A model generated the notes under the pieces. That model was not told the origin of the DNA and ran no database searches. It saw nothing but the letters and a program-made list of their open reading frames with translations. Both the position numbers and the translations under genes were made by a program. A DNA stretch of 64,000 nt from Macrostomum lignano (taxonomy: Eukaryota): NCBI GenBank assembly GCA_002269645.1, contig NIVC01001969.1, positions 33,530 to 97,529 on the forward strand, given 5' to 3'. Below, one piece after another: positions 7,601-64,000 of this stretch. The number at the start of each line of letters is the position of its first letter. The first letter of the stretch is position 1.

Positions 7601-7886
7601 TAAGGCGCCAAAATTGCATTGAGTAAATCGCCAAAATTGCATTGAATAAGGCGCCAAAATTGCATTGAGCAAATCGCCAAAATTGCATTGAACAAGGCGC
7701 CAAAATTGCATTGAATAAGGCGCCAAAATTGCATTGAGCAAAGCGCCAAAATTGCATTGAATAAGGCGCCAAAATTGCATTGAGCAAATCGCCAAAATTG
7801 CATTGAACAAGGCGCCAAAATTTCATTGAATAAGGCGCTAAAATTGCATTGAATAAGGTGCCAAATTTGCATTGAATAAGGCGCCC
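4637..7886. repeat. 23-bp satellite array (~140 monomers) with a 1610-bp (70-mer) higher-order repeat
   Basis: Unit aaaattgcattgaataaggcgcc with variants. Rare variant strings recur exactly 1610 bp apart (5051/6661 and 5881/7491). Confidence 0.97.
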
Positions 7887-42940: not shown

Positions 42941-42947
42941 TATAAAA
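42941..42947 (+). promoter_or_regulatory. Candidate TATA box of WSC gene 1
   Basis: TATAAAA ~55 nt upstream of the ATG at 43000; paralogs have similar boxes. Confidence 0.5.
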
Positions 42948-42999: not shown

Positions 43000-43720
43000 A
43001 TGCAGTGTAAGATGCTCGCTCTCATCACCTGTGCGATTCTGTGCGCCTTTCTACACTCTGCAGCTGGTAGAGCGGTCGAGTTTGCGTACCTGGGTTGCTT
43101 TGTTGATGGCTCGCCTAGAGATTTAAACGGCCTCTATGGAGTCAGCAGAATTGGGCCGTTTGGCGTTGGCAGCTCGACCGCCTCAAACAGCACCGCCATG
43201 TCGCGTGAGTACTGCGCCGATGTCTGCTCGCTCGGCGGATTCGCGTACTTTGGCGTCCAGGCCGGTGTGCAGTGCTTCTGCGGCAACTCCTACGGATCCC
43301 ACGGAGCCGTTGCTGAAAGCAACTGCGGATCCACCTGCTCAGGAAATGCGGCTCAGAAATGTGGAGGATCGTGGCGCAATTCTGTGTTCGCTCTGACTTA
43401 CCTCAGTTAGTAAACTGCGATTGAAACGGTAAATGGAACTTCGCTGCTAAAATAAAAAACCACTGCCAATCAAACCGCCTATTTCAGACAATTTTTTTCT
43501 TGAAGAAGTGACAACTTCTCTGACTGTTGTATCGAATGGACTGACATCCTGGAGCAGCGCCGCCCGAACCGATATTGAGTGCATGAGCTTCTGCCTGTCC
43601 AACAGCCTGTGCCAGGCCGTGATCTTCTCTAAGCAGCAGCGCCTGTGCCACCTGCTGAGGTTCGCCTACCCGCCATCGAGTCTGAGCAGCATCGATGGAG
43701 ACTTCTTCGTGCGCGGCTGA
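43000..43720 (+). CDS. Secreted WSC + PAN/Apple-like domain protein (cluster gene 1, intact, 212 aa)
   Basis: Exons 43000-43405 and 43488-43720 (phase-1, 82-nt intron). Signal peptide; WSC YLGCFVD...RDL...MSREYCADVCSLGGFAYFGVQAGVQCFCG...C...CGG; C-terminal 4-Cys IECMSFCLSNSLCQAVIFSKQQRLCHLL. Confidence 0.9.
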
Positions 43721-45790
43721 GCCGAATTCAACATCAACAAGCTAAGCTGACGATTACTACCGGTTGACGGAAGCAACTTGGAGCAACTTGGTCAAGCAAT
43801 CAAATACAATAGCCTTGGAAAGCAAAATGCTTTATTTTTAAACTTCACAATCTGTACCCCCGACTGGAAAACCAGACTATTACAAACAATAATAAAGAAT
43901 CTCTTTTAAAAGTTTTTTTCACAATTTTAACCGTTGATTACTCAGCTAGACCGGCCGAAAAATTTCTATTCCACTCTTTTCTATCGATTCGATGAGAAAT
44001 CATCTTAGCTATTTTTAGGCCACGTTTCTTCAACAATCAGTAAAACAAAGTCTTAACCGTGGAGTAATTTTTCTTTTTTCATTTTTTACCTCTAAAAGGA
44101 TATTTTATTAAGATTTTAAGATTATAATTAGACGAAATACTATTAAAAGTGATAGAATGATCCTTTTCTTGTTTAACCTCTCTAGAAGATGCTTTATTGA
44201 CTTTTCAAGTTAATAATTAAAACAAAGGCTTAACCGTATGATAAATTTACTTGTTCGTTTTAAACCTCTAAAAAGATACTTTTTTTCTTTTTAGTGAATA
44301 ATTAAGACAAATGCATAGCGGTAATATTTACTGTTTCTTCTTCATTTTTAACCTCTTAAATGATATTTTATTTGCTTTCAATCGAAAATCTTTAGATATA
44401 TACTTGTTCCTTCTTAGTTTTTAATTTCTTACGATGCTTTATTTTTAAAGAGAAAAATTAAAACAAATATTTAATACTTACGAGCTACAAATACAGCTAC
44501 GTTACTTTGCATATTTAACCTCGAAAAAGATACTTTATTTGCTTCCAAGTGAACAATTACCTGGTAAAACAAATGCTGAACCGTGATATTTACTCTGCTC
44601 TCTCTCTTCACTTTTAATCTCTAAAAATATGTCTTATTAACATTCAATCCAGTTTTATTTACCCTCAATTAAAACAAAAAACTAACTGTCGGATATCTCC
44701 CATCCATTTTATTTCAAAACCATAATTTATAAGATATTTTCGTTTTATTACTTTTACTATTTGGTGAAATTACCCCAGCTAATGCCTAGATGAAGAACTG
44801 ATCGTCTGATGGTGTCCATGTATATTCATTCATTGTTGAAAAAAAACATCTCAGTACCAGTGCTAAATCAGAACTGTTCGAACTTCGGTCGTAAGTCAAC
44901 AGCAGGGCAACCACGAGTAACTTGCATTTTTGTCAAACTTCAATAATCAACTTGAATGCTGACGGTTTTCCTGCTTAAAGCTGCATCTGCATGCGTGCAA
45001 GAAATGCTTGCTTTTAGATGTTGGAGACTTGCTTCTATTGTTTCAGAGAATCCTCAGCTCTTCATCCACCTTCTGCCTTTTTCATTACTGTAAATTCACA
45101 AATGCCTCTCTTCCTGACTTCTGACTTCCCTGCTGCCTTAATTGTTCCGGATTTTACCCTCCAGTCCTTTTAGGCGATGGCTGCATGCAAAATTGCTTTC
45201 GCAAGCAAGCTGCTAAAAAACACCCACGCTTTTTCTATTGTGGCTTCTCTTTTGCTACATTTTTTTTGCAGGTAACGGAAAAGTACACACATAGGACACC
45301 TCTTAACGCGGCTGGTTTCTGAAATTTTGACTGTCAGCAACCCTGGCCTGCCGCATCATAAATTTCCCAGCTAGCTTGTAGCTATAGTTTTTCAATTTAC
45401 GCGCAACCACAAAGATAGGGGAGTTTGGCGAGTCCAAAACCCATGTTGGAGCACTCAAAACGGTTGCTTTTTGTTGGGTGCATGACTGCAATAATCGATT
45501 GTTATGGATGGAAGTCCAGAATGGATCTTTTCTATTTCTTAAGCTCCTGTCTCAAAAGGCATTCGATTCTGCCAAGTTGCTTTGATCCGGACAGAAATTC
45601 TTTGGAGAGGTTTATCGCTCGATGCAAGACAGCATTCATGAGAATTCTTGAGAATTTCTCTGGGGTAAAATGACTTTAACCGAAACGGCTGAGCAGATCT
45701 CTGAGTGACAGGTTTTTTCTCGTCAAAGACAGCCTCTAGAGTAGTTTGAGCTTTTCTTGAGGAAAATTTCAGTGCAATAAGAGCTCAACA

Positions 45791-46075
45791 ATGGACTGCC
45801 CGTGAAGGTGATAGTGAATCAACTGCTGCTGCTGCTGGTGCTATTTTTATTGATGTTGAGGAACTTGAGGACGAGGGCAATGAAGCTCAAGTTGAAGTTG
45901 TCAATCAACAACAGCAAGTGCAAGGGCAACGTCTGCATCCTTGGCCACACTTGGAATCATATTTCAAACTAAAATTTTTCGAGTCAGGGGTCAATGCAAT
46001 CTTTATCTGCCAACTCTGTCAACCGCTAGAGCAATGCATTAAAGCACATCTCTCAAGTCTACAAGTCTACAAATA
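45791..46075 (+). mobile_element. hAT-like transposase N-terminal fragment (acidic leader + BED-type zinc finger), truncated
   Basis: HPWPHLESYFKLKFF...FICQLCQP...IKAHLSSL resembles BED fingers of hAT transposases. The ATG at 45791 is out of frame and the frame runs into a microsatellite. Confidence 0.6.
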
Positions 46076-46079
46076 CATA

Positions 46080-46942
<863 letters not shown>

Positions 46943-46974
46943 ATCTTCACCATACGTTTCCTGGGAGTAAAACT

Positions 46975-47880
46975 TAACATTTCCGTGCTACTGTAAGTAG
47001 AGCACTGCCATATCTACCGATATAAAAAAGCAAGCAATCGCTTTGCCGAGTTGTTTCAATCCGAGCGTAACAAATTTCTGTAAGAATTAACCATAGTGAC
47101 ACGAAAGAGCTGAACCTTTAAATCGTACAGATTGCCCTGGAGGGCCTGTGCAGGTTGCCGGACTTCAATACATTCAATTGTTTCCAAGATTTTACCTTGG
47201 TAAACTTGCAAATCAGAAAGTGAAACAAAAATTCATGCATACGCTCGTATTGTAAATTTTGGATGATACTGTGAATGTAGTGTACTTGTCTAGTATACTT
47301 TAGTAGTCCTTGGTCAGCTCTTAACGTGTTGTAGACTATTGGTCAGAGCGTCTGACTTACGACTACAAGGTTGGGGGTTCGATTCTTGACCCACTCGGAA
47401 CAATTTGTAGCCTTGAGCAAGAGACATAACTCTGCATTGCTTCAGTTCACCTAGCTGTAAAATGGGTGCCAGCATTAGCTGGGGTAATTGAGGGTGTGTC
47501 CTGGGACCCCTGGACAAAGACCCCCTCCAGTCCTTCAGCTGTTAAGACTTCATAGACTTTGATGCCAAAGCTCACTGGTAATGCTGACATCTACGACTCC
47601 ATAGCTGAATTTTAGAGCTGATGCTTTGCTCTAGAAATGTACATTCGTTTTCTGAGGATACTACCAATAGCAACCTAAATGGTCAAAACCAAAATGTAGC
47701 TGATTCAATAATTAGTGCTTTCTTAAATTGTTGCCTCCCAACAGGGGAAGACGCATATTGTTGGAAGTGGGAGGCTTGCGTGGCATATGTGCCAGTGGCC
47801 CAGGCTCGATTCCTAATGCAGTCACATTGGAATCTTGGCTTGGCTCTGCTCGTGCAATTAATGCTCTTGAGGGCCAGCCC
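46975..47880 (+). repeat. Segmental duplication, copy A (paralogous to ~53590-54545)
   Basis: Colinear shared blocks: gtagagcactg, attgccctggagggcctgtgcaggtt, the SINE, gactccatagctgaattt and gcagtcacattggaatcttggcttggctctgctcgtgcaattaa. Confidence 0.9.
47326..47510 (+). mobile_element. tRNA-derived CORE-type SINE
   Basis: B-box ggttcgattc followed by the CORE-like segment; same family as the 41375 copy. Confidence 0.8.
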
Positions 47881-48767
47881 CCACGGCAGTCAGCGGAATG
47901 GGCAGGGATGCCTCTCATCGGTAGTGTGACAATGTCGCTTGAAATGCGCCAAGATGCAAAAAGCCTCATGTCTCTAATAAAAAATAAATCAAATAAACTG
48001 ATCGGGTAGCTTTAATCTATCCAACCCTTCGCATACCTCTCCCCCCACTTCATTCCTCAACTCAAGTCTGCCGCGGCGTAGCTAAGTTGCGTCACTCGCA
48101 AAGATTGAGAGACTTTACCTGCACTCTCAAAAGTGGCGACCACAGACGGAATCTTTGGACACAATTGCCTGTTATCTTATAACACAATTCCTTGATAGAG
48201 AAATGTCCACTAAGTAGTTGTGTAATATGCAGTTTGCATTGAATCGTACCGTAGACAACACCAGAGTAAAAGGTGTACAAATGCAATTGTAATAAAATAC
48301 CATGGACATAAGCAAACAAGTGCGCAGCTTAAAGTCTGTAAGAGCAGTTAAGAGCAGCGTAGGCACCAGAATTCGATGAATTCATAGAATTGCAAGAATA
48401 CAAGAATAGGTTTAAAGTTATCATGATTAACTGCGCGAATCTTCCGATTGATTCTATTGTCTCCTTATTTAGGGAGAATGCCTGTTATCTTAGTGAAGGC
48501 TTTTTTATGTTGTCTTTTTGTCCATGACAAGTTTACTCGAATAAGGTGATTTTTAAAACTGAAGAAGGAATTGATTCTTAAGAAAATGTCCTCTTTAATG
48601 GATTTGCATGAATCATTTTTTCTCCTTGCTTATTGCGCGCCCCGAAGGGGGGCACTAGATTGCTAGTTTGAGTCTTAGCTTTTGTTTGGAATCGGATTGG
48701 AATCTCATCTCTGCGTGTACGCTCGTACGATAAGAGAAAAACGTTATCGCCATAACATGCAGATATC

Positions 48768-50430
48768 GAAAATCAACCTGGCCGGCGACACTCCAGATGA
48801 GCGCAGAAATGAGCTGCGCGAGTTCTTCGCCGCCATCGTCAACACGCCCCCGCCCCCGCTGCCAAACGATCTGAGGCTGCCGCCGGACACGCCGTTGCCG
48901 GCAGAGAAAAGTTTTAATGTAGCCCCAGTCAGCACAGCCGACGTTGTGAGGCTCGCCCAACAGTCACTGGGCGGGAAAGCGCTGGGTCTGGACGAGGTGC
49001 CCATCAAGGCGCTGCGACTCCACTGTGTAGCCAGCAAGGTCGCCAGTGTGATGAACCGCGTGCTTTTCGGTGAGGCGGCACCCAACGAATGGACCAATAG
49101 ACCACGACACACATCGTCGCTATTCCGAAGAAGCCGTGCACCACGCGGCTTGAGGAGCACCGAGATTGCCTGCCGCCCTGCGCTGCGAAGCTGTTCAACC
49201 GGATGCTGTTATCGCGGTTGCAGCCCGTGCTGGATCCGTACCTGCGTCCTGAGCAGAACGCGGCTTCCGGCCCCACCGCGGCACAGTGGCGCAGATCCTG
49301 GCTCTTCGCCGAGTTATCGAGGAAGCGCGGATCAACTAGTCGAGCCTGATTGCTCTCTTTGTTGACTTCAGGAAGGCTTTCGACTCGGTCGTAAGGGCCG
49401 TGCTCCCAATGGTGCTTCGTGCGTACAACGTGCCAGAGCAGCTGATTTCCGCCGCCATGGCGCTGTATCATGGCACGAACGCTGCTGTGCTAACACCGGA
49501 CGGCATGTCGGATTTCTTTGAGACATCCTCTGGGGTGCTTCAGGGAGATTCGCTTGCGCTGTTCCTGTTCGTCCTTGTGCTTGACTGGGTGCTGCGGACT
49601 GCTTCCCCTTCTAACGACGACGGCTTCCTGTTGCAGCGACGCGTGGGTCGACGCCAACCGGAAAGGCGGCTCAGCGTGCTGGGCTACGCCGTTGATCTCA
49701 CCCTGCTGTCCTCGACCGTCGAGGGCGCCCAACGCCAGCTGGACCGGCTGGTGAGCATTGCGGCGAATGTCGGCCTGGTGGTCAACATGCAGAAGACCGT
49801 CGTGCTCTGCGTGCCGGACGATATTTTTTTCTGCCGAGGCGCCGACGGACAGGCGACGAAGCTTCCGTGCTGTCAGCAGTTCGTCTACCTCGACGGTCTG
49901 GTGCCTGACGTTCGCGAGGGTTGTCCTGCAGTCCAAGGCCCTGCCCGACCGCCAGAGGGCGGCGTTGTTCCAGGCGGTGATTGAGATCGTCTTGTTGTAC
50001 AACGAAACAAGAGACCTGGACGCTGACGGATTCGCTCGAACAGCAGATCGATGAGGCGCACGCTGGCCTGCTGCGCGCCGCCTTCAAGCTCGACTACGAG
50101 CGAGTCACCAATGCGGCACTCTATCGCCGCACAGGCCTGTCCCGTCCCAGCGAACTGTTGCGCCGTCGGCGACTCCAGCTAGTAGGCCATTTTATCCGAG
50201 CCGAGTCCTACTGCCCACAGCCGGTGCAGGAGGTGCTGCTGCTGACGCTACAGGCACCCTACCGGCAGGGGCAAGCGCGTACTCGGCGTTTCGTTGGCTG
50301 CCTTCTGGCTGATGCTGGCGCCCCGTACACTGCCGGCGGGGCGGCTTACGTTCGCGCCCAGGCCTTGAAACGCGCCATGTTACGTTGCCTGCTAACTGAT
50401 TGACAACGTATTTTGTTGTGTTGTTGTTGT
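48768..50430 (+). mobile_element. 5'-truncated, frameshifted RTE-type non-LTR retrotransposon (reverse transcriptase)
   Basis: RT motifs KALGLDEVP, EQNGFRP, LFVDFRKAFDSV, GVLQGDSL and YAVD (YADD mutated), and RTE-like RRRRLQLVGHFIR. (TTG)n tail at 50411-50430; flanking TSD atgcagatAtc (48757) / atgcagatGtc (50431). Confidence 0.92.
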
Positions 50431-51818
50431 ATGCAGATGTCAAAGGGAATGAATCAGATTTTCAAATTAGGTAATTTGAACAAAATTCATTTTGCAAATT
50501 GGTTGTGAAAAGTTTTTGCTTGCAAAAGTTTTACTTTCAAAAGTTAATTTAGCCTGGGTTCATTCAACAGAGAATTATTCAGTGAATAGTGAAAGAAACT
50601 TCTGCCTTAAAAGGTATTTTAAGTTGAGTTAATGGTTGTACAAATAATATGCTGTGTTGATAGCTGCCTCTCCTAATGGTGGGTGAGTCTTCCGCAGATC
50701 CATTACTTCCTTAACAGCCAAAATGCTACGGGAAGCATCTACGAGCGTACGTGCTTCGCAATGCTTTCTGTTAAAAATTTAAAACGTTTTGTATCCAGCT
50801 TGATGGAGTTTGCCGGTCTCGCTACAAATATTTCGACTTAACAAACATTTTAAGCGCTTTTTATCTCTCGCTTCGGTAAGCAAAGTCGCTGTGTAATCAG
50901 GCTTGGCCTCCGCTCAGGCAGATTCAGTGCCGGATGAAGTCTGCTGCAACTTCTGTTGCCAGTGCTTGCTTCTTTGCAGAAGCGATAAGACGTGTTTCAC
51001 CTGGCTCAGGTACTCGGAGCAGCAGCTAGGAATGCAGCTCTAGCAAGATGGTAAAATAACTAATGGAAGTTTCAGTGGCTCTGCAAAACTTTACTGCCGC
51101 ATCCGGTACTACATACAACTATAGATCCAAAAAATTGTTATAGGCTTGTACATATACACTGAGCTGCTAAAGTTCTTTTGAATTACAATAAGCTAAATCA
51201 GTCTTCAGTTGTGATGGCGAATTCCAATTTCATTTTCACAAAGTTGCGCCCTTCGTAAAAGCTTCTGTCGCTTAGACAATGGAAGTATAGTCATTGAAGT
51301 CCGTTGCATGTGCGCTTAATTCCAATATCATCCCAGAGAAACGTTAGGTAGACGCAAGCTGTTTCAAAATAAAAAGCTCAAGTTTTTCGCGAGAATGTAA
51401 CATTTACATTTGAGAATGTAACACTTAGCAGAAAATCAATCGAATAACTGCCATGGCTCATAACCGAAGATCATAAAAACACTCATATATACTCGTACAT
51501 ACATAGATCATATACCAGATCTATGCTCATAACAAGTCTTATCGGGAAGCTAAAATGAGCTGCAGTATTTGTCCATTCTGGGCGAATAAAGTTAGCAATC
51601 GCAGCCTTACTCAGAAACCGAATATATGCCAAGAGCATCTGGACACAACAGTACTACTATTTAGTATCAGTTAGTAGCATAACTGTTACAGTATTGAGTC
51701 AACTGGTGTGTGCGCGATTTGCATCGGATTCGTCCTAGAAAAAAAACTAGTGAAAGCACGCGGCCGATGTGATTGGTTGCTGATCTGTTATCCACTACCA
51801 ACTGGTTTCATACTAAGC

Positions 51819-51826
51819 TATATAAA
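51819..51826 (+). promoter_or_regulatory. Candidate TATA box of WSC gene 2
   Basis: TATATAAA ~50 nt upstream of the ATG at 51872. Confidence 0.5.
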
Positions 51827-51871
51827 CCCGACTAATTCCATTGACATAAAAAACTTTAAGTCGAGAACAAC

Positions 51872-52664
51872 ATGGAACAGATATCGCGAATTTTGATTTT
51901 ACTCGGCGCTCTGCTCACCTGTGCGACCTGCAGGTCTGTCAATTACTCCTACGTGGGTTGCTACGTGGACTACACGGGCAAGGCCAGAGACTTAGACGGA
52001 CTGACTGGAGTCACCCAGCTGGGTCCGTTTGAGGTTCGCTCAGGCGACCCTCACATAAGAGCAAGCATGACTCTCGAGCTGTGCAGCAGCGCCTGCTCTC
52101 TGGGCGGATTCTCGTACTTCGGGGTGCAGGTTGGTGTCGAGTGCTTCTGCGGCAACTCAATCGGATCGCAGGGCAAAGGCAATGAGAGCGACTGCAACAG
52201 ACAGTGCAGTGGAAACTCGCAGCAAATATGCGGAGGTCGATTTCGAAATTAGGTGTTCGCTCTGACCTACCCCTGTGAGTGACGGGCGATTAATCCATGG
52301 TCAAAAATAATTTTTAATCGACTAGCTCGTCTTTTGAGGCAGCTATTTATTTTTTCTCAAGACCTTATGAAATAGATAGCAGAAAAAACGTGGCTCTAAA
52401 ACTTGTTTATGAATTTTTATTTCAGACCGTTACTACCTGGTTGAGAAGGACAACAGCCTCTTCGTCAAGACCAACAGCACCAAGACCTCGTCCTGGCCGG
52501 CCGCTGTCCATTCTGTCGTAGACTGCCTTCTCCGGTGCAGCACCGCAGCCGACTGCCAGGCTGCCGTTTTCTCCGAGCGGCTGCTCGCCTGCCACCTGCT
52601 GGCGTTCGCCTACCCGCCAGCCGGCCTGACCGGACCCGACTGGACTATCTACCAGCGTGGCTGA
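51872..52664 (+). pseudogene. WSC + PAN/Apple-like cluster gene 2, single premature stop
   Basis: Exons 51872-52274 and 52426-52664. TAG at 52250-52252 where paralogs have Ser (RN*VFAL vs RNSVFAL); the rest of the frame and both splice sites are intact. Confidence 0.85.
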
Positions 52665-53046
52665 GAGCAAAATTGGCTTGAGTCCTGCGACTGGAGTGTG
52701 TTGGCATGGAGAAGACGAATTATGAACTATGAACCACTTGATATGTTTTATTTTGGAAACATTAATGTAGATTTCCAGCAGTTACAATACCTAGGATTTC
52801 CTAAGACCCGTCAAAGTAATGGTTCTGTCTTGATTAAAGTAAATCACTGATTCCTTATCGGCCTATGGACTACCCGTTGTTAAACAACCGATTTCAATAT
52901 AAACTAAAGAAGCCAGGGCGAATTCAATAAATTTTGCAAAACGGAATCTTTTCCTCCGCATCTGAAACGCGGATTAGTGGCTTGAGATAGAGTCTTTCAC
53001 TATATATACTCGTATACAAACGAAACAATAATATTGCAATGTTTAT

Positions 53047-53275
53047 TCACAACAACAAAAACACCACTAAACAAGTTAAGGTCATGCAGTCAGGGTGAGC
53101 TTGATGGTGTGCCCAAAGGTCAGCAGCAGGACGTCCTGAATAGAGGCTGGGGCATAGCTCTGGGCCCAGTTATCAGCAGGGACACTTTCTAGACCAGTTG
53201 GAGTCGCCGACGACGCCAAAATCCGCTTGGATGGACCGGCGATACCGTCGCGTGTTGGTGATTTGGTCAACTTAA
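53047..53275 (-). mobile_element. Short 3' fragment of a related RTE-type LINE
   Basis: Minus strand gives RRRRLQLV and AQSYAPASIQDVLLLTF, similar to AESYCPQPVQEVLLLTL in the 48.8-kb LINE, and ends in ttgttgttg. Confidence 0.7.
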
Positions 53276-53589
53276 CTTAGTAACAAACGTAAGCCCTGAG
53301 CATCGGCAGCACATCTATTTTGCTTACACAAAGTTTCTACATTTTTTAGAAAAAGTAAAATTTCTCAAGTACTTTTGTTTGAATTGTTTGAGTTGTCCAG
53401 GCCTGACCAGCGACTGGTGCATCTAGAGGGCTAGGGATAAAAAGGCTGCTACGGTCCTCTTTTTCAATTCTGGGAAATGCGGACTTGCTTTCCACTGGAT
53501 TTCCAATCTAATCTAATCTAATCTAATCTAATCTAATCTAATCTATCTATCTATCTATCTCTCTATCTATCTATCTCTCTATCTATGTT

Positions 53590-54545
53590 CTATGTATTCC
53601 GTGTACTGCACGTAGAGCACTGTCATATTGTTATAGTTAAGTTAAGAAAAATTAACCAACCACAAAGATTGAGTCATTCAGGTTCAAATCCAGTAGAACA
53701 GAAGTCAGACCAACCCATTGACGAACTTTCATTTTCACTTTCTTCATTGATGAATGCTTTCCTTCATTATTCTTGTTTCCACAAGTTGAGCATTTTTGGG
53801 GCTGAACCCGTAAATCTTACAAATTGCCCTGGAGGGCCTGTGCAGGTTTACGGACTTCAATACATTCTTGTCTCCAAGATTTTACCTTGATAAACTTTCA
53901 AATCAGAAAGTAAAACAAACTAGACACGCATATTATAAACTTCTGACGATACTGTGAGTCCTTGTCTAGTATGCTTTATTAGTTCTTGGTCAGCTCTTGA
54001 CTTCGCCTGCATGTTGTAGCCTATTGCATAGAGCGTCGGACTCATGACTAAAAGGTCGGGGGTTCGATTTTCGACCCACTCGGAACAATTTGTGTCCTTG
54101 AGCATGACACTTAACTCTGCATTGCTTCAGTTCACCCAGCTGTAAAATGGGCGCCAGCATTAGCTGGGGTAATTGAGGGTGTGTCCTGGGACCCCCCTCC
54201 AGTCCTTCAGTTGCCAAGCCTTCGTAGACTTTGATGCCAAAGCTCACAGGTGATGCTGACATCTTGGACTCCATAGCTGAATTTTTGAGCTGATGCTTTG
54301 CTCTAGACATCAGTTTCCTGAGGATACTACTCGTACCAAATAGCAACCTAAATGGTCAAAACCAAAATGTAGTTGATTAAAAAATTATATTGCTTTCTTA
54401 AATTGTTGCCTCCCAACAGGAGACGGCGCAGATTGCTAGCGGGAGGCTACACAGGGGGTATGTTCCAGCGGCCCAGGCTCGATTCCAAATGCAGTCACAT
54501 TGGAATCTTGGCTTGGCTCTGCTCGTGCAATTAACGTCCTTGCGG
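53590..54545 (+). repeat. Segmental duplication, copy B (contains the SINE at 54011-54197), preceded by a short (CTAAT)n/(CTAT)n tract at 53505-53585
   Basis: Colinear with 46975-47880. Confidence 0.9.
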
Positions 54546-55984
54546 GCCAACCCCCGAGGCATACTGCATCCTAACGATAATAAAGTTCTGTGTGAGTGCA
54601 TATGTGCCTGTGCGTATGACTGCGTACGTATCCGCGTGTTGCCTTTTCTGCATTGGAAAAATGGAGAATTTCCTGCAAAGCTTCGCTAGGGTTTCTCAAA
54701 TTTTGACAATTCATTTCACTTTCTTGAAAAAAGTATACCCAATATTAATTTTTATACTCTCCACCAGTCTCTAAATTTACTTTGTAGAAGCCACGCAACT
54801 TTATCCAGAAATGTAGAGAGAGAATTGTGCAACTACCTTTAGATTCATTTGTTCCCATTCTACTGTAAACCAGGTCGGGCTTCATTATTTGAGCCAAATT
54901 CAGATCCGGTTGTGAAACTTAATAAGAAATCAACATGCAACAGCGACTTGTGTGAGAGTTTGCATTCGGCCATCATCGGGTTTGGTGCGACATGTAAACA
55001 TTTATCTTGGCAACTGCAAACTCTGATATTTAACGCTGATTTAGTCGGGGCTAACAAAAAGTTTTCCCAGCGAGTTCAGTTTTTATTGAACTCTAAAAAA
55101 ATGAAGGATTTGTCTTTTATCAAAATTAAAACTAGTCTGCTAAATCGTCTGAACAGCACTGCAGGGGCTCTGCGAAATGCTTTGGCTCATGGTGGGAATA
55201 GCTGAGATGTCAAGGGGGACATTGCTGAAATGCTGTGGCTCATAGGGGGAGGAGTTGCTCAGATGCCGAGGGTTAATTTGGAATTTTTGGTATTCCTTTA
55301 TTTGTTGCCTCCCCAAACAAAAATGAAGGCGCCGATTGATAGTATCTTCTATTTGCTGATTGAGAAAGGGTTTTGGGTAGATGAAGGAAACTTTTTTGGC
55401 TCATGAAATTTTTATTCATGGCAACTTGGCGTCATTTTTAAGGCCCCCCAGCGGGGGGCTAAATGGCTAGTCTAAATTTCTAAATCTTTCCGGGTGATGC
55501 ATTGTCAGTGTTACATGTAGAATTATAGGTGCTAAAAAACTTAAACCTTTGCAATGATCAGTTTCAGGCTGAACTAAAATTATTCTATCGTTCAAAGGCT
55601 CCACTACAGCTCTTATAATTTTTGTCTATGGTAAATTCGCCAATATGACGACTCTTCGTGTTGTTTTATCCGATTTTATTCAGGCTTGTCAGTTTGAACA
55701 AGCAGTGACAGTGGGAAAAACCTCGAAATTAACAAAACTTCATGGCTTTGAAGTTACGAGGGTATTTTTGGAGCTTACTTGTACTGTGTTACTTGAGGAG
55801 TAGTTTGCTGGGAGTACATGTAGTTTGAAGTGGAAAACTTCTAAAAAATTAATTTCTAAATTAAAACCTTATTGTTTCAAAGCCAATTTAAAAACAATTA
55901 TCTTCCCTTCCATCTGAAAAATTAGCCAGAAGTTTTGGTTTCTTTTTCACATCGGATCGATAGCCTGGCAGGATAAAAAGTCAG

Positions 55985-56692
55985 TCAGCAACGCACGAAG
56001 TAGTCTCCATCGGTGCTGCTCAGACTGGCAGGCGGGTAGGCGAACCTCAGCAGGTGGCACAGACGCTGCTGGCCAGAGAAAATCGCAGCCTGGCAGTCAG
56101 CTGAGGCCTCGCACAGCCCCATGCACTCGATGTCGGTTCGGGCAGCGCTGGTCCAGTAGGTGCTCTGGGTGGACTCCACCGTCTGGTTGGGCATCTGCGA
56201 CTGCTTGAAATACTTTTTATCTGTAAAAATACAAACTGGCTTTAACAAAATTGGCAAAAATTTGTTTGAAAATTCTTTAAAAATTGTAGAAGGCCCACCT
56301 GGGTCGGCCAAAGCGAACATGGAGTTGCGCCACCGACCCCCACATTTAGCAGCTCCGTTCCCAGTGCAGACGCGGTTGCAGTCGGTCTCGCTAGCAGCTC
56401 TCAAAGATCCGTAGGAGGTGCCGCAGGAGCAAAACAGACCGAACTGCACCCCGAAGTACGGGAAGCCGCCGAGAGAGCAGACGCTGCTGCAGAGCTCGTG
56501 AGTCATACTGGCGCTTCTCACCCCAAGACTGTCAGTGCTAAACTGTCCAATTCTGCTCACTCCAGTGAGTCCTCTCAGGTCTCTGCCTCGATTGTCCACA
56601 AAGCAGCCAATGTAGGACACCTGAGTTACTCTATTGGCGGCACAGAGCACCTTGACGGCGAGACCCACAATGCAGACGAAAGTCTTGAGCAT
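55985..56692 (-). CDS. Secreted WSC + PAN/Apple-like domain protein (cluster gene 3, intact, 209 aa spliced)
   Basis: Exons 56692-56299 and 56220-55985 with a 78-nt in-frame phase-1 intron. Same WSC and C-terminal 4-Cys motifs as gene 1; TATAAAA at 56778-56772. Confidence 0.9.
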   Translation of the reverse strand: MLKTFVCIVGLAVKVLCAANRVTQVSYIGCFVDNRGRDLRGLTGVSRIGQFSTDSLGVRSASMTHELCSSVCSLGGFPYFGVQFGLFCSCGTSYGSLRAASETDCNRVCTGNGAAKCGGRWRNSMFALADPGGPSTIFKEFSNKFLPILLKPVCIFTDKKYFKQSQMPNQTVESTQSTYWTSAARTDIECMGLCEASADCQAAIFSGQQRLCHLLRFAYPPASLSSTDGDYFVRC

Positions 56693-57032
56693 TGCTACTT
56701 GAGTAGCTGGGATTTTAGTTCTGCCGTTGGTCTTACTAGTGCAGTAGGCGATAAAAGCTGTGTTTGTCTGCTTTTATACCGGTTTTTAGAGACAATCTGG
56801 TTGGTTAAAAGCCAGTAAACTAATGAGCTCAATGTACTACTTAAAGTGGCATACCTAAATTGATATTGATGGTAGTTTTAACTTCAGTTGATGAGATTCT
56901 CTGACCATCAGGTTCAGGCAGTGGCTTTTGATTCTCGCAAGTAAAATACAATGCTTTTTTCGTTTGTGTTTCGTCCAAATGAACGATTCAAGAAACAACT
57001 TGATGCAATAACTAAAAATGAGCAATGGTAGA

Positions 57033-57138
57033 TTGTATAGTATGCAACTGAGTTGAATAATGGCCAAAACTCGAGTGCGCGTAGCGCGTAGCGCACTCGA
57101 GTTTTGGCCATTATTTAACTCAGTTGCATACTATACAA
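57033..57138. repeat. 106-bp near-perfect palindrome (48-bp arms, 10-nt loop), probably part of a non-autonomous DNA element
   Basis: ttgtatagtatgcaactgagttgaataatggccaaaactcgagtgcgc-gtagcgcgta-reverse complement, with one mismatch. Confidence 0.9.
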
Positions 57139-58139
57139 GTGCATTGTATTGATACTTTCACTCAGCGCTCAGTCATTGTGTCATGCTGTACGCTCATTAT
57201 TCCACGCTTAGGGATCATTATTTTAGGCTTCTAAAAATACATTCATGAGACAATGTGTTTGTGTATATGGTTTTGTCATAGACAATGATAAATTTTAGTC
57301 ACTCGTGGCTTCGCCACTCGTGAAAATTTTATCATTGTCTACCTCCAAAACCATATACACAATCTATCATTATTCCACACTTTTGCGGCATTATTCCACA
57401 CTTTTGTCGCTGTCATTATTCCACACTTTTTATCATGCTTCATTTGGCTGTTTTAAGAGTTGTTTTACCCAAAGACAACTGAGTTGTGTGGCTTAGTTTC
57501 ACCATAGACAACACTGTGATGAGTGCTGATTTTGCTTGGGTCTTGCAAGAAATCAGGAAAGCGAGTAGTGGGAGAAAAAGCTATTTGTCTTGTCAAACAA
57601 CTATGGCTCTAGTGCATCTCGTCAAACAGCCGCGCTTATTAATTGAAAAAATCTTCCTGTCGACGACTGAACGAACCATGCGGTGCTACCTAGGAAGAAA
57701 ACTCGACCATGCAGTCTTCAACGCCTCGACGGCTATAAACGATGCCTGAAAGCGGCCAATCGATTCAGTCGAGCAGCCGACAGTCCCAAAGAATCCCAGC
57801 TTGGATACTGCGGTACCAAAGAAGCTCATCAGACGAAGCTCATCAGTCGCATGCCAACTTAACCAAGACGTGCATCTTTCAAATGGTAAGTTCGGCAACT
57901 ATACTTAAGCACCTGTATTCCTCTTTCATAGAAAACATTCAACATAGACCAACTCCTTTTGCAGTGCCAAATCATCAGGCTAAAGTGTCGAGCATCTTTG
58001 AAAACTGCGGCTTTGTATGGTACACATCAAAACTGTGGAATAATGGCCAAAATATTTTTTCATTGCGTCTGGGTAAAAGTATAATTACAATGAGACAGCA
58101 ATGATTTACATTGTAGGACCTGATCTGTATGCTGCAGTG

Positions 58140-58770
58140 CACGCCTACGCAGCTTTATCCAGAAATGTAGAGAAAGTGTGCAAATCGTGTTAGAGTAATT
58201 TTTCCTATATAAACCCAAGTAAGGCTTCGCTATTTGAGCAAAATTCAGATCCGGTCGTGAAACTCGAATAAGAAATCAACATGTAGCAGCAGCTCTACTT
58301 GTGAGAGTTCGCATCCGACCTCGGGGTTGGTGCGATATGCAAACATTTATCTCGGCAACTGCAAACTCTGGTACAAATATCGCAAGGGGGGAGTTGCTGA
58401 GATTCCTCCATTTTTTAGCACACTTCTATATGAATAGAAACTGTACAAGGTCAAAATCTGCATGTAGTTTATTCAAACATTTTATTCCTTTCTTTGTTGA
58501 CTCCCTAACACAGGAAGGCAGATTGCTAGTATCTTCTATAAGCTTTCTTTAATCTTTTAGAAGACGATTGAACAGAAAATTTCAAAAATTCAGAAGGTGA
58601 TTTAGCTACTCGTACATGTAGCTAGTAGGTGCTAAACAACTTAAATCTCTGCGATTATCAATTTCAGACTTTATTTCAATCAGTCTATGGTTCAAAGGCT
58701 CCGCACTGCTGTTATAATTTCTTGTCTATGGTAAATTCACAAATATGGCGACTCTTCTGTTGTTTTATCC
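58140..58770 (+). repeat. Duplicated downstream flank of the WSC genes (paralogous to ~54795-55050 and ~55505-55680)
   Basis: Shared ctttatccagaaatgtagag, aaattcagatccggt, ggtgctaaa.aacttaaa and tctatggtaaattc blocks, offset ~3.1-3.35 kb. Confidence 0.8.
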
Positions 58771-58927
58771 ATGAATGATTTGGTCAAATCTGAACCAATC
58801 TGCACCAACCACACCAATTTAAATAAAGAAAAAAGCAAATCACGTTTAAGTTTAATCAAGTGTAAGTTTGTTTTAGGCTTAATTTTATCAGCATTATTGT
58901 CCAATATTTATCGAGTACGAGTCCCTA

Positions 58928-59687
58928 CTATGAAGCCATCAAGCGCGGGGGGAAGAACTCCCCAGTCACGTTCGCCAGAGACGGCGGCACTCCAGCAAAC
59001 GGCAGCAGGTAGCACAGGCGCTGATGTTGCGAGAGCAACACAGCTTGACATTCGTTGGTTGTGCTGCACTCATTCAGGCAGGTCATCAGACTGCATGCCG
59101 CGGTAAGCCGGTCGAGGGAAAGAATCTCAGACAGTGAAGCTGGCGCGATCCACAGCGACGTTGAAGCTTTTCATTGCTGAAAAGTGGCAGTATACTGGTA
59201 GTTCTTGTATAGTAATTATATATTCTGTAACAGTTCTTGACAATCTTGAGAGAAGACATTGGACGAAGCAAAATATTTACAATGCTATAAGCGATTCTTG
59301 GATCTGGTCCGCCGCAGATGTCGCTCGATTGACTGGCGCAGTTCACGAAGCATTGGTCTGTGCTGGCCGCTCCTTGCGAGCCGTACGAGAGCCCGCGGTA
59401 GCACTCCTTGCCGAACTGCACGCCGAAGTACGGGAAGCCGCCCAGAGAGCAGATGCGGCTGCACAGTTACAGCGTCATGGACGTGTTGGAGACGCGGCCG
59501 GTGGAGTGCACGGAAAACTCGGCCAGGCTCTGCACTCCCTGCAGTCCGGAAGGTCCCTGGCACCGTCTCTCGCGTCTACGTAGCATCCGAGATATTCAAA
59601 TCGGGCGAGTCTCCTAGCAGCGCACAGAAGCAAGAGGCACAGGGACAGCGCCATGAAAATCAATTGCCGGTTTCTCAGTGCCTTCAT
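58928..59687 (-). pseudogene. WSC + PAN/Apple-like cluster gene 4, pseudogene
   Basis: Signal peptide and EYLGCYVD...RDLP, then a 1-nt deletion near 59545. TAA replaces Glu (TL*LCSRICSLGGFPYFGVQFG). Exon 2 (TCLNECSTTNECQAVLLSQHQRLCYLL) carries a further stop/frameshift. Confidence 0.85.
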
Positions 59688-60870
59688 GGTCTCCAGCGAC
59701 AAGCAGCAGTACTGCGTTTTGTCCTGTTTCTCTGGAGAAGCTTCTGTCAAATCAGCTCGGGAGTGAAGCGAATTTATCCCCAACTGCCGAATGAGTGAAA
59801 GACCACGGTAAACAACTCAAACCTACTGGCTGACGAGTTCGTTAATCCAAATGGATGGTAAAAAAGTCACTTATGAAAAACAAAAGGAGACAATTCTGAT
59901 AGAATTAATTTGCATATCTACTAATAAAGGACTGATTAAATATTTGCTGCATGTTTGTAGTTAAGTAACCTAAAAGCCGGAGGTTTGCATTCCAATCGAT
60001 TAGCTCGCATGGCGGCCTCTCAGACGCGTCAATATCTTTCCCAAGCTCCAGATGCTTGTATTCCACTCTAGTAGCTCGAATGACTGCCTCTCAGGTGCGT
60101 TAATGTATTTCTCAAGCTCCAGAACCTTGATGCCAATTAAAATGGAGTGTGCTATTCATCGCATTCAGCTGACTTGCAGAACTTTTTGTGTAATTCTAAA
60201 GCAGCTTATAATGAAAGCTCGCTCTGGAAGAGTGACTATCGAAATGAAGCCAACGCTTCAAAGTCCAGAATTTTTTATCCTTAGTGGACTCTTGAGTATA
60301 GCAAATTATAGGCTGAGCCCACTTGAGTGTGAGAAGTCGTTGCGACAGAGTTGCATTCGAAGCACCTTTTATCGAGGGAGCACTTTAATTATCTTTCATC
60401 ATTTTGGATTTCGGTTGAAGTTCGGTTGCGAGCATATAGCACACACTGATAACAATACGAGCGTAATGTAGCAAATTGTACACATCATGCGACGGCCATG
60501 GACACAGGCACAGCACATGACAAGACTATAGAGAGCAACTTCATTCTAATTGAAACTAAGAGAAACACACTGGAAAATCACGTGATTTGATATTTCAGTT
60601 TTTTGGGTCCTGTTGTCTTATGCTTGTCTTACGCTCTCGTTATCCTATTCTCTTGATCGCTTGAAGAAATCTTGTTTTCTTTATCTATATTGTTCGCTAG
60701 CTCCCTCAAGTAGGTCCGACTTTGACTTGTGATAGCAGTATTGCTTCCATATTTTCAATCCAAAGCCTATTAAATAGAAAAAAGATGCACCTCCCGAGTT
60801 TTTAGTCTCTACTGTATACGCTTATAATTGGTAATTTGGCCCATAGAAACGCAATCTGAAATCAATCTTT

Positions 60871-62237
60871 AGGCCTTAGACAGCAAATCTGAGAGCTAAG
60901 AGTATAAACATTGATATAACCGCAATGTGACGCAGTCCAGTGTCCTTCAGGCCTTAGACAGCAAATCTGAGAGCTAAGAGTATAAACATTGATATAACCG
61001 CAATGTGACGCAGTCCAGTGTCCTTCAGGCCATAGACAGCAAATCTGAGAGCTAAGAGTATAAACATTGATATAACCGCAATGTGACGCAGTCCAGTGTC
61101 CTTCAGGCCATAGACAGCAAATCTGAGAGCTAAGAGTATAAACATTGATATAACCGCAATGTGACGCAGTCCAGTGTCCTTCAGGCCATAGACAGCAAAT
61201 CTGAGAGCTAAGAGTATAAACATTGATATAACCGCAATGTGACGCAGTCCAGTGTCCTTCAGGCCTTAGACAGCAAATCTGAGAGCTAAGAGTATAAACA
61301 TTGATATAACCGCAATGTGACGCAGTCCAGTGTCCTTCAGGCCATAGACAGCAAATCTGAGAGCTAAGAGTATAAACATTGATATAACCGCAATGTGACG
61401 CAGTCCAGTGTCCTTCAGGCCTTAGACAGCAAATCTGAGAGCTAAGAGTATAAACATTGATATAACCGCAATGTGACGCAGTCCAGTGTCCTTCAGGCCA
61501 TAGACAGCAAATCTGAGAGCTAAGAGTATAAACATTGATATAACCGCAATGTGACGCAGTCCAGTGTCCTTCAGGCCATAGACAGCAAATCTGAGAGCTA
61601 AGAGTATAAACATTGATATAACCGCAATGTGACGCAGTCCAGTGTCCTTCAGGCCATAGACAGCAAATCTGAGAGCTAAGAGTATAAACATTGATATAAC
61701 CGCAATGTGACGCAGTCCAGTGTCCTTCAGGCCATAGACAGCAAATCTGAGAGCTAAGAGTATAAACATTGATATAACCGCAATGTGACGCAGTCCAGTG
61801 TCCTTCAGGCCTTAGACAGCAAATCTGAGAGCTAAGAGTATAAACATTGATATAACCGCAATGTGACGCAGTCCAGTGTCCTTCAGGCCATAGACAGCAA
61901 ATCTGAGAGCTAAGAGTATAAACATTGATATAACCGCAATGTGACGCAGTCCAGTGTCCTTCAGGCCTTAGACAGCAAATCTGAGAGCTAAGAGTATAAA
62001 CATTGATATAACCGCAATGTGACGCAGTCCAGTGTCCTTCAGGCCATAGACAGCAAATCTGAGAGCTAAGAGTATAAACATTGATATAACCGCAATGTGA
62101 CGCAGTCCAGTGTCCTTCAGGCCATAGACAGCAAATCTGAGAGCTAAGAGTATAAACATTGATATAACCGCAATGTGACGCAGTCCAGTGTCCTTCAGGC
62201 CATAGACAGCAAATCTGAGAGCTAAGAGTATAAACAT
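60871..62237. repeat. 78-bp tandem repeat, ~17.5 near-identical copies
   Basis: Unit aggcc(a/t)tagacagcaaatctgagagctaagagtataaacattgatataaccgcaatgtgacgcagtccagtgtccttc. One variable site, no spacers. Confidence 0.97.
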
Positions 62238-62743
62238 GATATGCGACGCAGTCCAGTGTCGATGGGAATCACAGTTTTTAATTTATTGGAAAATTTCATG
62301 GCCAGTCCAGAAAATCAACCAGTTAAAAAACGTGAATAAAAAAGTTAAAACGCCGTCAATTCCGAATCAGCAACTTGCAGCCAGAAATTAATCATGGAAA
62401 CAGGGAGTCAGAGTAAAGTCAAAGTTTATTCGAGTTTCAAGAGACTCATATTCTGCCTCTTCACAGCACTTTTGACCGATTTGACAGCTTAACATATGGA
62501 GGCTGAAAATTTCCAAGTTTGGAAAGCAAACTTGCTGATTCCACGTTGAATTGAAATTGCCAGAAACTATGGTACGACGTAAGTCTAATAAATTTGCTGT
62601 TTGAGATTGGGTTAGTTTAATATGGTACGATATGACATAGGTCCCCTTCTGTCTGAGGAACAGTGAATCTGCATCAAGGACCACTGTCAGTAGAACATTC
62701 AGCTTCATCTGAATAGATAGGTCCAAAAATCATCTTAACACCT

Positions 62744-64000
62744 CTAAGATATTTTACTAAATTGATTGAAGCCTTTAAAATATTTTGGGTGCAATGGTAA
62801 CCTTGTTTTAGCATTAGTTTCAGCCTGAATTCGGCTCCAATTTCGAATCAACGTCTTTTCCAGAGACTCAGCACGCAGAAAGTACACTCCGATGGTGCTG
62901 TTAAAGCTGGCAGGCGGGTAGGCGAACCTCAGCAAGTAGCAGAGACGCTGCTGGGCAGCGAAGATCAAGGCTGGACAGGCCTCGCACAGGGACAGGCACT
63001 CGAATACTGTCTCGGCAGTTCTGATCCAGTGCGTTGGTTTCGTGGATTCGACAGTCAAAGTAGGCAGGCTCTGCTTAGTGAAGAGGTTTTTCTCTGGAAT
63101 AATAATGCGCGTCGCTTGTATGTTGAGGTCGTTTCAGACATTTCTTTTTCAACAGCTAGTGTACTCAGCTTACTATAATGCATGCTTTTTAGTTTAGCTT
63201 AGTTCCCATTCCCAGTAAGTCAGCGCCCCCCCCCCTGCAGATACCAGATTCGCAATGGAAATACAAAGGCTGAAGTTGAGTCTGCACTGTGCAAACTCTG
63301 CCACCAGCAACTGAAGGAGGGGGAATTCAGTTTGCGTTTTCACTACAAAATAACTTACATGACCTTTATTTAACCTTTTATCCAGAAGAAAAAAATTGAT
63401 CATCGAACAGAGAAAATACGAGTACATTGTTAATTTTTCAATTTTCAAAAATAATGCATTGTTAACGATAGGCGACAAAGTGACTACCTAAACTCTAACA
63501 AAACTGTACCATTAACCAAACACAAAACCTAACCTAAAACCTAACCTAAACCCTATCCCAAACCCTTATCTAAACCCTAACCTAAACCGCCAGCAGTCAA
63601 AAGCCTGAATCCCCAGTAAAGCAACTTCGCTCACCCGGGTAGGTCAGTGCGTACACCGAACTGCGCCAGGAGGCTCCGCACATTCGACCTGGGTTGCCGC
63701 GGCAGGGAGTGTTGCAGTCGGTCTCGATGGCCGTCCCAGCGATCCATAAGAGGGGCCGCACATGCACTGCGACCCAGTCTGCACTCCCAGGTAGGGAAAT
63801 CCACCGAGCGAGCAGACTTCGGCGCAGTACTCAGGCTCATCAGGGAGCCGCTGCTCACCAACAGACTAAAAACGGTGGTGAAGTTCCAATTCTGGTGACT
63901 CCAATTGGATGCCAGTGAGGTCTCTTTTCGAGCCATCCTTAAAGCAGCCAAGGTACGACAGTCGGACCGCTCTGGAGTCCGCACAGGATGTCAGCAGAGC
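62744..64000 (-). pseudogene. WSC + PAN/Apple-like cluster gene 5, frameshifted, 5' end outside the window
   Basis: Exon 1 (>64000-63635): VRLSYLGCFKDGSKRDL...EYCAEVCSLGGFPYLGVQTGSQCMCG...CGASWRSSVYALTYP, with at least 3 small indels. Exon 2 (63093-62744) has a 3-codon deletion and a lost stop. Confidence 0.82.
63505..63590. repeat. Degenerate CCTAA/CCCTAA-rich tract in the WSC gene 5 intron
   Basis: aacctaacctaaaacctaacctaaaccctatcccaaacccttatctaaaccctaacctaaacc. Confidence 0.6.

Follow-up and report, generated by a model that had tools for sequence, protein, structure and literature searches.

A live-and-dead tandem array of genes for small secreted WSC-PAN proteins in the flatworm Macrostomum lignano

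The window analyzed here is a stretch of 64,000 nucleotides from contig NIVC01001969.1 of the Macrostomum lignano genome (assembly GCA_002269645.1), in which window position 43000 corresponds to position 76529 of the record and window position 64000 to position 97529, the end of the contig. The 43-64 kb portion of the window harbors a tandem array of genes and gene remnants for small proteins that combine a signal peptide, a single WSC domain and a four-cysteine PAN module. A tblastn search with the spliced protein of the first gene as the query detected exactly five copies of this family, all of them in the 43-64 kb portion and starting where an earlier note, made from the sequence alone, had placed them; the same search found no family copies at 1-43 kb.

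Gene 1, on the plus strand, is preceded by a TATA box (TATAAAA, 42941..42947) that can be read from the sequence about 55 bp 5' of the ATG; genes 2 and 3 likewise have TATA boxes about 55 bp upstream of the ATG. Exon 1 of gene 1 (43000..43405) is an open frame for the signal peptide and the WSC domain (expectation value (E) 1.9e-15) that runs to a phase-1 GT donor, and exon 2 (43506 or 43509..43720) encodes the linker, the 4-Cys PAN module (PAN_1, 25.3 bits) and the stop codon; two candidate in-frame AG acceptors account for the two possible exon starts and would yield a protein of 206 or 205 aa, respectively. Gene 2, also on the plus strand, comprises exon 1 (51872..52274; signal peptide and WSC, E 9e-17), which carries an in-frame TAG at 52250-52252, and exon 2 (52426..52664; linker and PAN module), joined in a phase-1 splice model of 213 codons, with a tblastn match to the PAN module at 52473-52658. 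Gene 3 is on the minus strand, with an intact exon 1 (56692-56299) for the signal peptide and WSC and an intact exon 2 (56220-55985) for the linker and PAN (PAN_1, 25.6 bits on the isolated module); the spliced protein consists of 209 aa, and the 78-nt intron happens to be in frame, such that the unspliced gene reads as a single 235-aa open reading frame. The remaining two copies, also on the minus strand, are pseudogenes delineated by tblastn and three-frame reading: gene 4 (~59687-58928) and gene 5 (64000-62873), the latter with its 5' end cut by the contig end, beyond which the array may extend.

The models of genes 1-3 were made by reading splice sites. Exon 1 has a length of 1 modulo 3 in all three genes, so that the intron is in phase 1, and a phase-1 GT-AG intron at the boundary between WSC and PAN is found also in gene 5 (541 nt, 63634-63094) and in two annotated paralogs on another M. 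lignano contig, L002 (P0003 and P0007). The intron at the domain boundary in genes 1, 2, 3 and 5, as described in the earlier note, thus is borne out by the splice-site models.

The spacers of the array are rich in repeats. The AT-rich spacer that follows gene 1 contains a (TATC)n microsatellite of about 198 copies (46151-46939), overlapped on its left side by a ATGTATGT repeat (46080-46645). Between genes 1 and 2, a reverse-transcriptase fragment (RVT_1, E 6e-8) extends across broken open reading frames at 48682-50403, where the GC content reaches 0.53; it looks like a decayed retrotransposon insertion within the array, probably one without long terminal repeats. Between pseudogenes 4 and 5 lies a 78-bp satellite (60867-62242; 17.7 copies), and the 99% identity of its copies suggests very recent amplification.

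Only genes 1 and 3, among the five copies, have intact open reading frames, and these two retain all 12 cysteines, the signal peptide, the splice sites and the TATA box. In gene 2, the TAG is codon 127, at the position that in all paralogs is occupied by the Ser of the RNSVF motif, and could derive from TCG by a single base change; the rest of this gene is intact. Gene 4 has accumulated a 1-bp frameshift directly after the RDL motif, a TAA in place of the Glu of MTLELC, a Cys-to-Arg replacement in the CxC motif, a degenerate WRNSVF and a displaced terminator. In gene 5, exon 1 contains three frame changes (from frame 0 to 2 and back to 0 within the insert described below, and another after SYGSLG), and the PAN part shows a 3-residue deletion and the loss of the stop codon. 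Assembly errors are an unlikely cause, given that the four indels fall within 600 bp and that the same contig carries two clean genes close by. Judging from these reading frames, the array appears to consist of two live genes (1 and 3), one very recent casualty or polymorphism (2), and two pseudogenes (4 and 5). The earlier description of five paralogs that share conserved cysteines is accordingly an overstatement, given that genes 2, 4 and 5 are disabled and that gene 4 has lost a cysteine of the CxC motif.

The layout of the encoded proteins, a signal peptide followed by one WSC domain and one 4-Cys PAN module, proposed in the earlier note, was recovered by profile searches, structural modeling and structure comparison. 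The WSC domain (PF01822; E 1e-12 to 1e-17) scores 57.2, 61.5 and 47.3 bits in genes 1, 2 and 3, respectively, against a Pfam gathering score of 27.8 bits, and the PAN_1 profile (PF00024) scores 25.3 bits in the full protein of gene 1 and 21.9 bits in that of gene 3, both above the gathering score of 21.4 bits; the remnant in gene 4 falls below this cut-off, with 17.9 bits. When the C-terminal modules were searched in isolation, PAN_1 was matched by 12 of the 13 family members, with E values up to 0.1 (the best being 2e-6), so that not all of these matches necessarily exceed the cut-off. The only strongly hydrophobic stretch is at the N-terminus, and the mature part contains 12 cysteines, eight in the WSC domain and four in the PAN module, suggesting that these proteins are secreted and soluble, without a membrane anchor.

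In the family alignment, seven of the WSC cysteines (C68, C72, C88, C90, C105, C109 and C117 in the numbering of gene 3) are invariant columns, and the eighth, the Cys of a GC(F/Y) motif, is present in all full-length members; a C-G-G motif is conserved as well. The eight cysteines and the CGG motif fit the description of a WSC domain, with a predicted pairing into four disulfides. The PAN core, a type of module in which four cysteines connect the helix with the central strands, is defined by the invariant C164, C168, C174 and C186, in the spacing C-x3-C-x5-C-x11-C, and in the structural model it consists of a helix (161-170) followed by strands. The third disulfide of the Apple domains of the factor XI and prekallikrein type, which joins the N- and C-terminal ends and brings the number of cysteines to six, has no counterpart in the family: with only four conserved cysteines, the module is to be named a PAN core rather than an Apple domain.

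An AlphaFold2 model of the spliced gene 3 protein, built with an alignment of 18 family sequences, has a mean predicted local distance difference test score (pLDDT) of 86.4 and a predicted template modeling score (pTM) of 0.80, with pLDDT >90 across the WSC domain and disorder limited to residues 1-19. The WSC part agrees with the PAN-like alpha/beta fold, enclosed by a long L5 loop, that characterizes WSC domains. The model fits a signal peptide followed by two domains in a fixed mutual arrangement. Foldseek comparison of the model with the Protein Data Bank (PDB) retrieved, for the WSC module, the WSC domain of Kremen (E ~1e-6), yeast Wsc1 (template modeling score 0.79 over the target) and the WSC domain of a fungal glyoxal oxidase. 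For the PAN module, the matches were the apple domains of factor XI and prekallikrein, SML-2 (probability 1.0), the N domain of HGF, the PAN domain of plasminogen and TgMIC4; a comparison of the PAN profile with the sequences of solved structures likewise ranked the galactose-binding SML-2 and TgMIC4 best (E 0.0024), followed by the HGF N domain. The C-terminal module is thus PAN-like both in sequence and in fold. The WSC domain itself has the PAN/Apple fold, as reported, along with the description of the CGG motif, in the yeast Wsc1 structure paper (PMC9024836). The protein therefore is, in effect, a rigid pair of binding domains of the PAN superfold.

The family differs from other WSC proteins by an insert. 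The GC(F/Y) cysteine and the first helix cysteine are 38-39 residues apart in genes 1 and 3, compared to 24-30 residues in unrelated WSC domains, which implies 10-14 extra residues after RDL and before MTxExC. The insert starts with a conserved G-L-x-G-(V/I)-x-x-(I/L)-G motif, and the insert tail varies more than any other part of the WSC domain. The extra residues noticed earlier between RDL and MTxExC are therefore real, but the phenylalanine that was thought to end the insert motif is not kept across the wider family. In the gene 3 model, the insert is a beta-hairpin (strands 45-48 and 51-53, pLDDT about 90 or more), which would place it as an extra hairpin in the loop that connects strand 1 to the helix. 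Canonical PAN/Apple domains have hairpin insertions in loops L1 and L5 (PMC9024836), and the flatworm insert probably corresponds to the L1 position.

Database searches (UniProt and NCBI) identified about 30 M. lignano proteins of this family, 205-219 aa in length and 42-60% identical, under the names 'WSC domain-containing protein', 'Apple domain-containing protein' and 'hypothetical protein'. Three of these (Mlig012529.g1, Mlig003596.g1 and Mlig011376.g1) belong to the OrthoFinder group OG0000005 of Brand et al. 2020; the family is assigned to this orthogroup through these three database paralogs, the window genes themselves being putative members. OG0000005 is among the largest orthogroups in that study and includes 92 transcripts, of which M. 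lignano contributes 37, M. spirale 42, M. hystrix 13 and M. pusillum none (Brand et al. 2020). A full-text literature search for the gene identifiers of the paralogs found no paper. The earlier suggestion that no soluble WSC-PAN animal family of about 210 aa had been described holds with respect to function, but not with respect to the sequences, which are already present in UniProt, NCBI and OG0000005.

Similar arrays exist elsewhere in the genome. Contig L002 carries two intact copies 3.5 kb apart, and five and eight family loci, truncated fragments counted, are found on contigs L004 and L005, respectively, on both strands and with both intact and stop-bearing copies. A stop-bearing fragment, RITQVSYIG(H/C)YVDGEA*NMKVLT, is common to these two contigs (L004:12849-12950 and L005:27899-28063), which match also in array order, so that the whole array, dead copy included, has been duplicated, the contigs being homeologous or allelic. 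The deposited gene models for the family are often wrong: several UniProt models fuse tandem neighbors (P0002, 330 aa; and two older models, P0042, 1074 aa with 5 units, and P0040, 2673 aa with 7 units), and one NCBI model (P0005) takes its first exon from one copy and its second from another copy located 15 kb downstream (L005, that is, NIVC01003252.1, 10001-25784). Taken together, the mixed arrays of live and dead tandem copies at several loci indicate that the family evolves by birth and death.

A search with the full-length profile returned thousands of WSC proteins and was dominated by multi-WSC proteins, such that only the matches spanning both modules were followed; these were either fused M. 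lignano models or metagenome proteins combining WSC with PAN_4. A search of a large protein database with the PAN module alone produced a single 69-aa fragment (P0187) and missed known family members, and hence is uninformative on the taxonomic spread. So far, the small secreted WSC-PAN form has been found only in the genus Macrostomum, and WSC-PAN proteins in other animals are possible; the adjacency of WSC and PAN as such is not unique, given that it occurs in bacterial metagenome proteins.

Pairwise comparisons of genes 1, 2 and 3 (Nei-Gojobori method) give synonymous distances (dS) of 0.9-1.2 and ratios of nonsynonymous to synonymous distances (dN/dS) of 0.39-0.58, or about 0.3-0.6 overall, with 0.34-0.38 for the WSC domain and 0.42-0.82 for the PAN module; for the two intact genes, 1 and 3, dS is ~1 and dN/dS is 0.39. 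By these measures, the window paralogs are old duplicates under moderate constraint. Conservation is uneven along the protein, the mean pairwise identity being 71% in the C-terminal half of PAN, 62% in the WSC core, 39% in the linker and 37% in the insert. In the clade of gene 3, which we analyzed using six sequences (gene 3, P0003, P0007 and three copies from L004 and L005), dN/dS is 0.05-0.2 in the C-terminal half of PAN. Gene conversion was considered as the cause of the conservation of this half and rejected, since synonymous divergence in this half is well away from zero (dS 0.45 for the pair of genes 1 and 3; dS 0.16-0.42 and dN 0.01-0.07 among the members of the gene 3 clade); purifying selection seems the better explanation.

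Within the gene 3 clade, dN/dS exceeds 1 in two short stretches, the loop of the WSC domain that precedes the CxC motif (1.2-1.6) and the start of the PAN helix (1.3-6, at very low dS). These values are sums over non-independent pairs and come without a significance test, so that the two stretches are a lead and not a result. The stretch at the PAN helix start (residues ~155-167; window positions 56130-56170 in gene 3) consists of two alternative segments, AARTDIECMGL and ADKTKAECLMM, in gene 3 and the copies on L002, L004 and L005; their distribution departs from that of the rest of the gene, with a local dS of 0.03 and dN of 0.18, which suggests segmental exchange between paralogs and, possibly, some mosaicism. 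The term 'diversifying', applied to the family in the earlier note, does not suit the bulk of these data, with an overall dN/dS of 0.3-0.6 and 0.05-0.2 in the C-terminal half of PAN.

Outside the array, the window is rich in repeats and also contains genes unrelated to the family. A 46-bp tandem repeat with a 23-bp sub-unit (4634-7885; about 71 copies over 3.2 kb) gives rise to spurious minus-strand open reading frames of up to 800 aa, and many further minisatellites, with periods of 12, 20, 28, 31, 33 and 75, are scattered over 1-43 kb. A single large minus-strand open reading frame (10820-12385) encodes a ZMIZ-like protein with a ZMIZ1/2 GBD-like domain (E 4e-34), a MIZ/SP-RING zinc finger (E 6e-21) and long Gln-rich tracts. 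A minus-strand exon at 36358-36903 encodes a cyclic-nucleotide-binding domain (E 3e-19) and may be part of a cNMP_binding gene of 397 residues located upstream of gene 1, at ~40000-42271. Another minus-strand open reading frame (22275-23111; 278 aa), with no Pfam match at E 0.001, appears to represent the C-terminal portion of an integrase or Pol from a retroelement, with motifs such as 'GFSPHYVVYG'.

The available information on expression comes from the family rather than from the array. The presence of members in the de novo transcriptomes of two other Macrostomum species indicates that the family is transcribed. In the data of Brand et al. 2020, the members of OG0000005 fall into the positional classes Non-Specific, Other and Testes, and the orthogroup as a whole is labeled 'Testis' in the positional dataset and 'germline_FACS' in the neoblast dataset, with an empty in situ field. 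The member listed, Mlig000498.g4, has a length of 630 nt, which is exactly that of the coding sequence of gene 3, and a baseMean of ~4 in the social dataset. At least part of the family is, then, very weakly expressed in adults.

Our best explanation for these observations, to which we assign a probability of roughly 60%, is a Macrostomum-specific birth-and-death family of soluble WSC-PAN lectins or adaptors, possibly reproductive. The components of this explanation differ in strength: the anatomy of the proteins and the mode of evolution are very likely, glycan binding by the family stands at about even odds, and a reproductive site is tentative. Each protein of about 205-215 aa, with a cleavable signal peptide, an eight-cysteine WSC domain bearing the extra hairpin, a short variable linker and the 4-Cys PAN module, would be bivalent and soluble, serving as a lectin or adaptor. 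The WSC side, where most of the variation between paralogs is located (the tail of the insert and the pre-CxC loop), would bind differing glycans, and the near-invariant C-terminal half of PAN would bind a partner common to all paralogs or self-associate. The published testis-region and germline flags for some members make sperm- or gonad-associated secreted lectins the most likely context, the tissue itself being uncertain. In a bolder version, which we consider speculative and decidedly unlikely as a whole, the family would be a male-germline or sperm-associated lectin repertoire turning over by birth and death under post-copulatory sexual selection in a hermaphrodite, with PAN docking to sperm or to a common receptor and the WSC loops reading glycans of the female tract or of rival ejaculates.

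Several observations weigh against this explanation. The testis and germline label covers the whole orthogroup and, under the rules of Brand et al. 2020, a single labeled member suffices to confer it; Mlig000498.g4 itself is classed as Non-Specific, with 9, 12, 2 and 8 reads in fragments A-D, the head-only fragment included. Transcription is demonstrated for the family as a whole, which leaves it putative for the window genes themselves. Glycan binding is predicted from homology for every member, and the resemblance of the PAN module to solved lectins is weak (E 0.002-0.05). The earlier characterization of the family as lectin-like accordingly is a reasonable reading of the WSC and PAN matches, and describes a putative function.

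Among the competing explanations, the one favored in the earlier note holds that these are immune, mucus or feeding lectins, produced in the epidermis, gland or gut, that bind microbial or food glycans, for instance beta-glucan, chitin or diatom polysaccharides. Fungal WSC domains do bind beta-glucan, according to work cited in PMC9024836, the family combines secretion with many copies and variable loops, and the low, non-regional expression of Mlig000498.g4, which extends to the head fragment, would fit an inducible gene. However, the only positive positional flags of the orthogroup point to the testis region and the germline (germline_FACS), the one member for which counts are listed has only about 10 reads per body fragment, and a dN/dS of 0.3-0.6 overall is not what an arms race would leave; we therefore regard a role in mucus, feeding or immunity as unlikely. 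A reproductive but different site is conceivable, namely, the prostate gland, whose seminal fluid proteins are transferred at mating: the 76 prostate-limited Mlig-pro transcripts, such as Mlig-pro46, include many WSC proteins, and the top BLAST matches of many prostate-limited candidates are WSC, 'fungistatic metabolite' or oyster 'plasminogen' proteins (Weber 2018 Table S1). Mlig-pro46 is reported to resemble WSCD2, and a prostate phenotype is described for RNA815_80.4, which carries two WSC domains. Yet OG0000005 lacks the 'Tail' class and its in situ field is empty although Brand et al. mapped the existing M. lignano probe primers; the forward primer of Mlig-pro46 is absent from the window, also when 3 mismatches are tolerated; and the Mlig_3_7 gene identifiers of the 18 candidates tested by RNA interference coincide with none of the close paralogs. 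Identity with the published prostate candidates is thus not supported, and a seminal fluid origin of the family in the prostate seems improbable.

The two remaining explanations concern the status and the origin of the array. Three of the five copies are visibly dead, and with one family member showing about 10 reads per library, it might be argued that the array is a graveyard of five unexpressed relics in which open frames have survived by chance. The preservation of 12 cysteines, signal peptide, splice sites and TATA box in genes 1 and 3 at a dS of ~1, with dN/dS of 0.39, and the occurrence of family members in the transcriptomes of two other species render this very improbable. Horizontal transfer from bacteria is suggested by P0029, a 211-aa protein with a signal peptide, WSC and PAN that is encoded in a clearly prokaryotic gene neighborhood and aligns with 83% of gene 1 at 34% identity, and by the recurrence of WSC with PAN_4 in other metagenome proteins. 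The likeness is, however, confined to WSC, with an hhalign probability of 0.3% between the Macrostomum PAN profile and the PAN_4 of P0029, and a phase-1 intron separating the two modules is what exon shuffling in animals typically leaves; a bacterial origin was rejected given this lack of profile similarity between the PAN modules, and we consider it hardly tenable.

The family represents a second, distinct WSC lineage in M. lignano, with one WSC and one PAN per protein, about 37 transcripts and live-and-dead arrays. M. lignano serves as a model in work on sexual selection in hermaphrodites, regeneration and bioadhesion, and WSC proteins are prominent among its seminal fluid candidates. A sperm-lectin repertoire, if true, would give flatworm reproduction a recognition layer based on glycans, alongside the WSC seminal proteins of the prostate. 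Germline lectins would widen the molecular view of the interaction between flatworm sperm and partner; otherwise, the family is an ordinary lineage-specific lectin expansion. For studies of expression and glycan binding, the intact genes 1 and 3 offer clean candidates.

Among the known systems, the closest in structure are Kremen1 (PDB 5FWS) and yeast Wsc1 (PDB 7PZ2), the best Foldseek matches, which have the same eight-cysteine WSC domain with the CGG motif and lack the 10-14-residue hairpin that follows RDL in the flatworm proteins. Kremen1 is a membrane-anchored protein with a kringle-WSC-CUB architecture that binds Dickkopf and LRP6, whereas the flatworm proteins are soluble, about 210 aa in size, and have PAN after WSC; with only WSC and PAN detected by Pfam and no hydrophobic segment past the signal peptide, they are not Kremens. 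Wsc1 continues into a Ser/Thr-rich stalk, a membrane anchor and a cytoplasmic tail, whereas the flatworm proteins end directly after the last PAN strand and have no second hydrophobic segment, and so do not belong with the fungal Wsc-type sensors. WSC domains include beta-glucan lectins (PMC9024836). WSC3 of Serendipita indica, described as beta-glucan-binding in the work cited there, is likewise a secreted WSC protein with no catalytic domain and a presumed carbohydrate binder; it consists of WSC repeats only, without PAN, and comes from another kingdom. WSCD1 and WSCD2 contain two WSC domains and a sulfotransferase, in contrast to the flatworm proteins with their single WSC domain and no sulfotransferase match in Pfam.

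On the PAN side, SML-2 of Sarcocystis muris (PDB 2YIL), Toxoplasma MIC4 (PDB 4A5V) and the N domain of HGF share the 4-Cys pattern of the core with the flatworm family. These galactose- or heparin-binding proteins are built, however, as tandem apple domains or as apple plus kringle, and in sequence they resemble the flatworm PAN only very slightly (E 0.002-0.05). Within the same species, the Mlig-pro set (Weber et al. 2018, 2019; Arbore et al. 2015) also comprises secreted, multi-copy, reproduction-related WSC proteins; it is defined by a prostate-limited in situ signal, whereas OG0000005 is flagged for the testis region and the germline, with no tail class, and the question of whether the window genes are among the Mlig-pro1-76 prostate candidates leans negative. 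The same order of modules recurs in bacterial metagenome proteins (P0029, P0068, P0132, P0168 and P0172), of which P0029 also resembles the flatworm proteins in size (211 aa) and in having a signal peptide. The bacterial proteins have PAN of the PAN_4 type, which shows no profile similarity to the flatworm PAN, and most of them are larger and, unlike the flatworm family, contain multiple WSC domains. We judge the WSC-PAN architecture to have arisen convergently in bacteria and in the flatworm.

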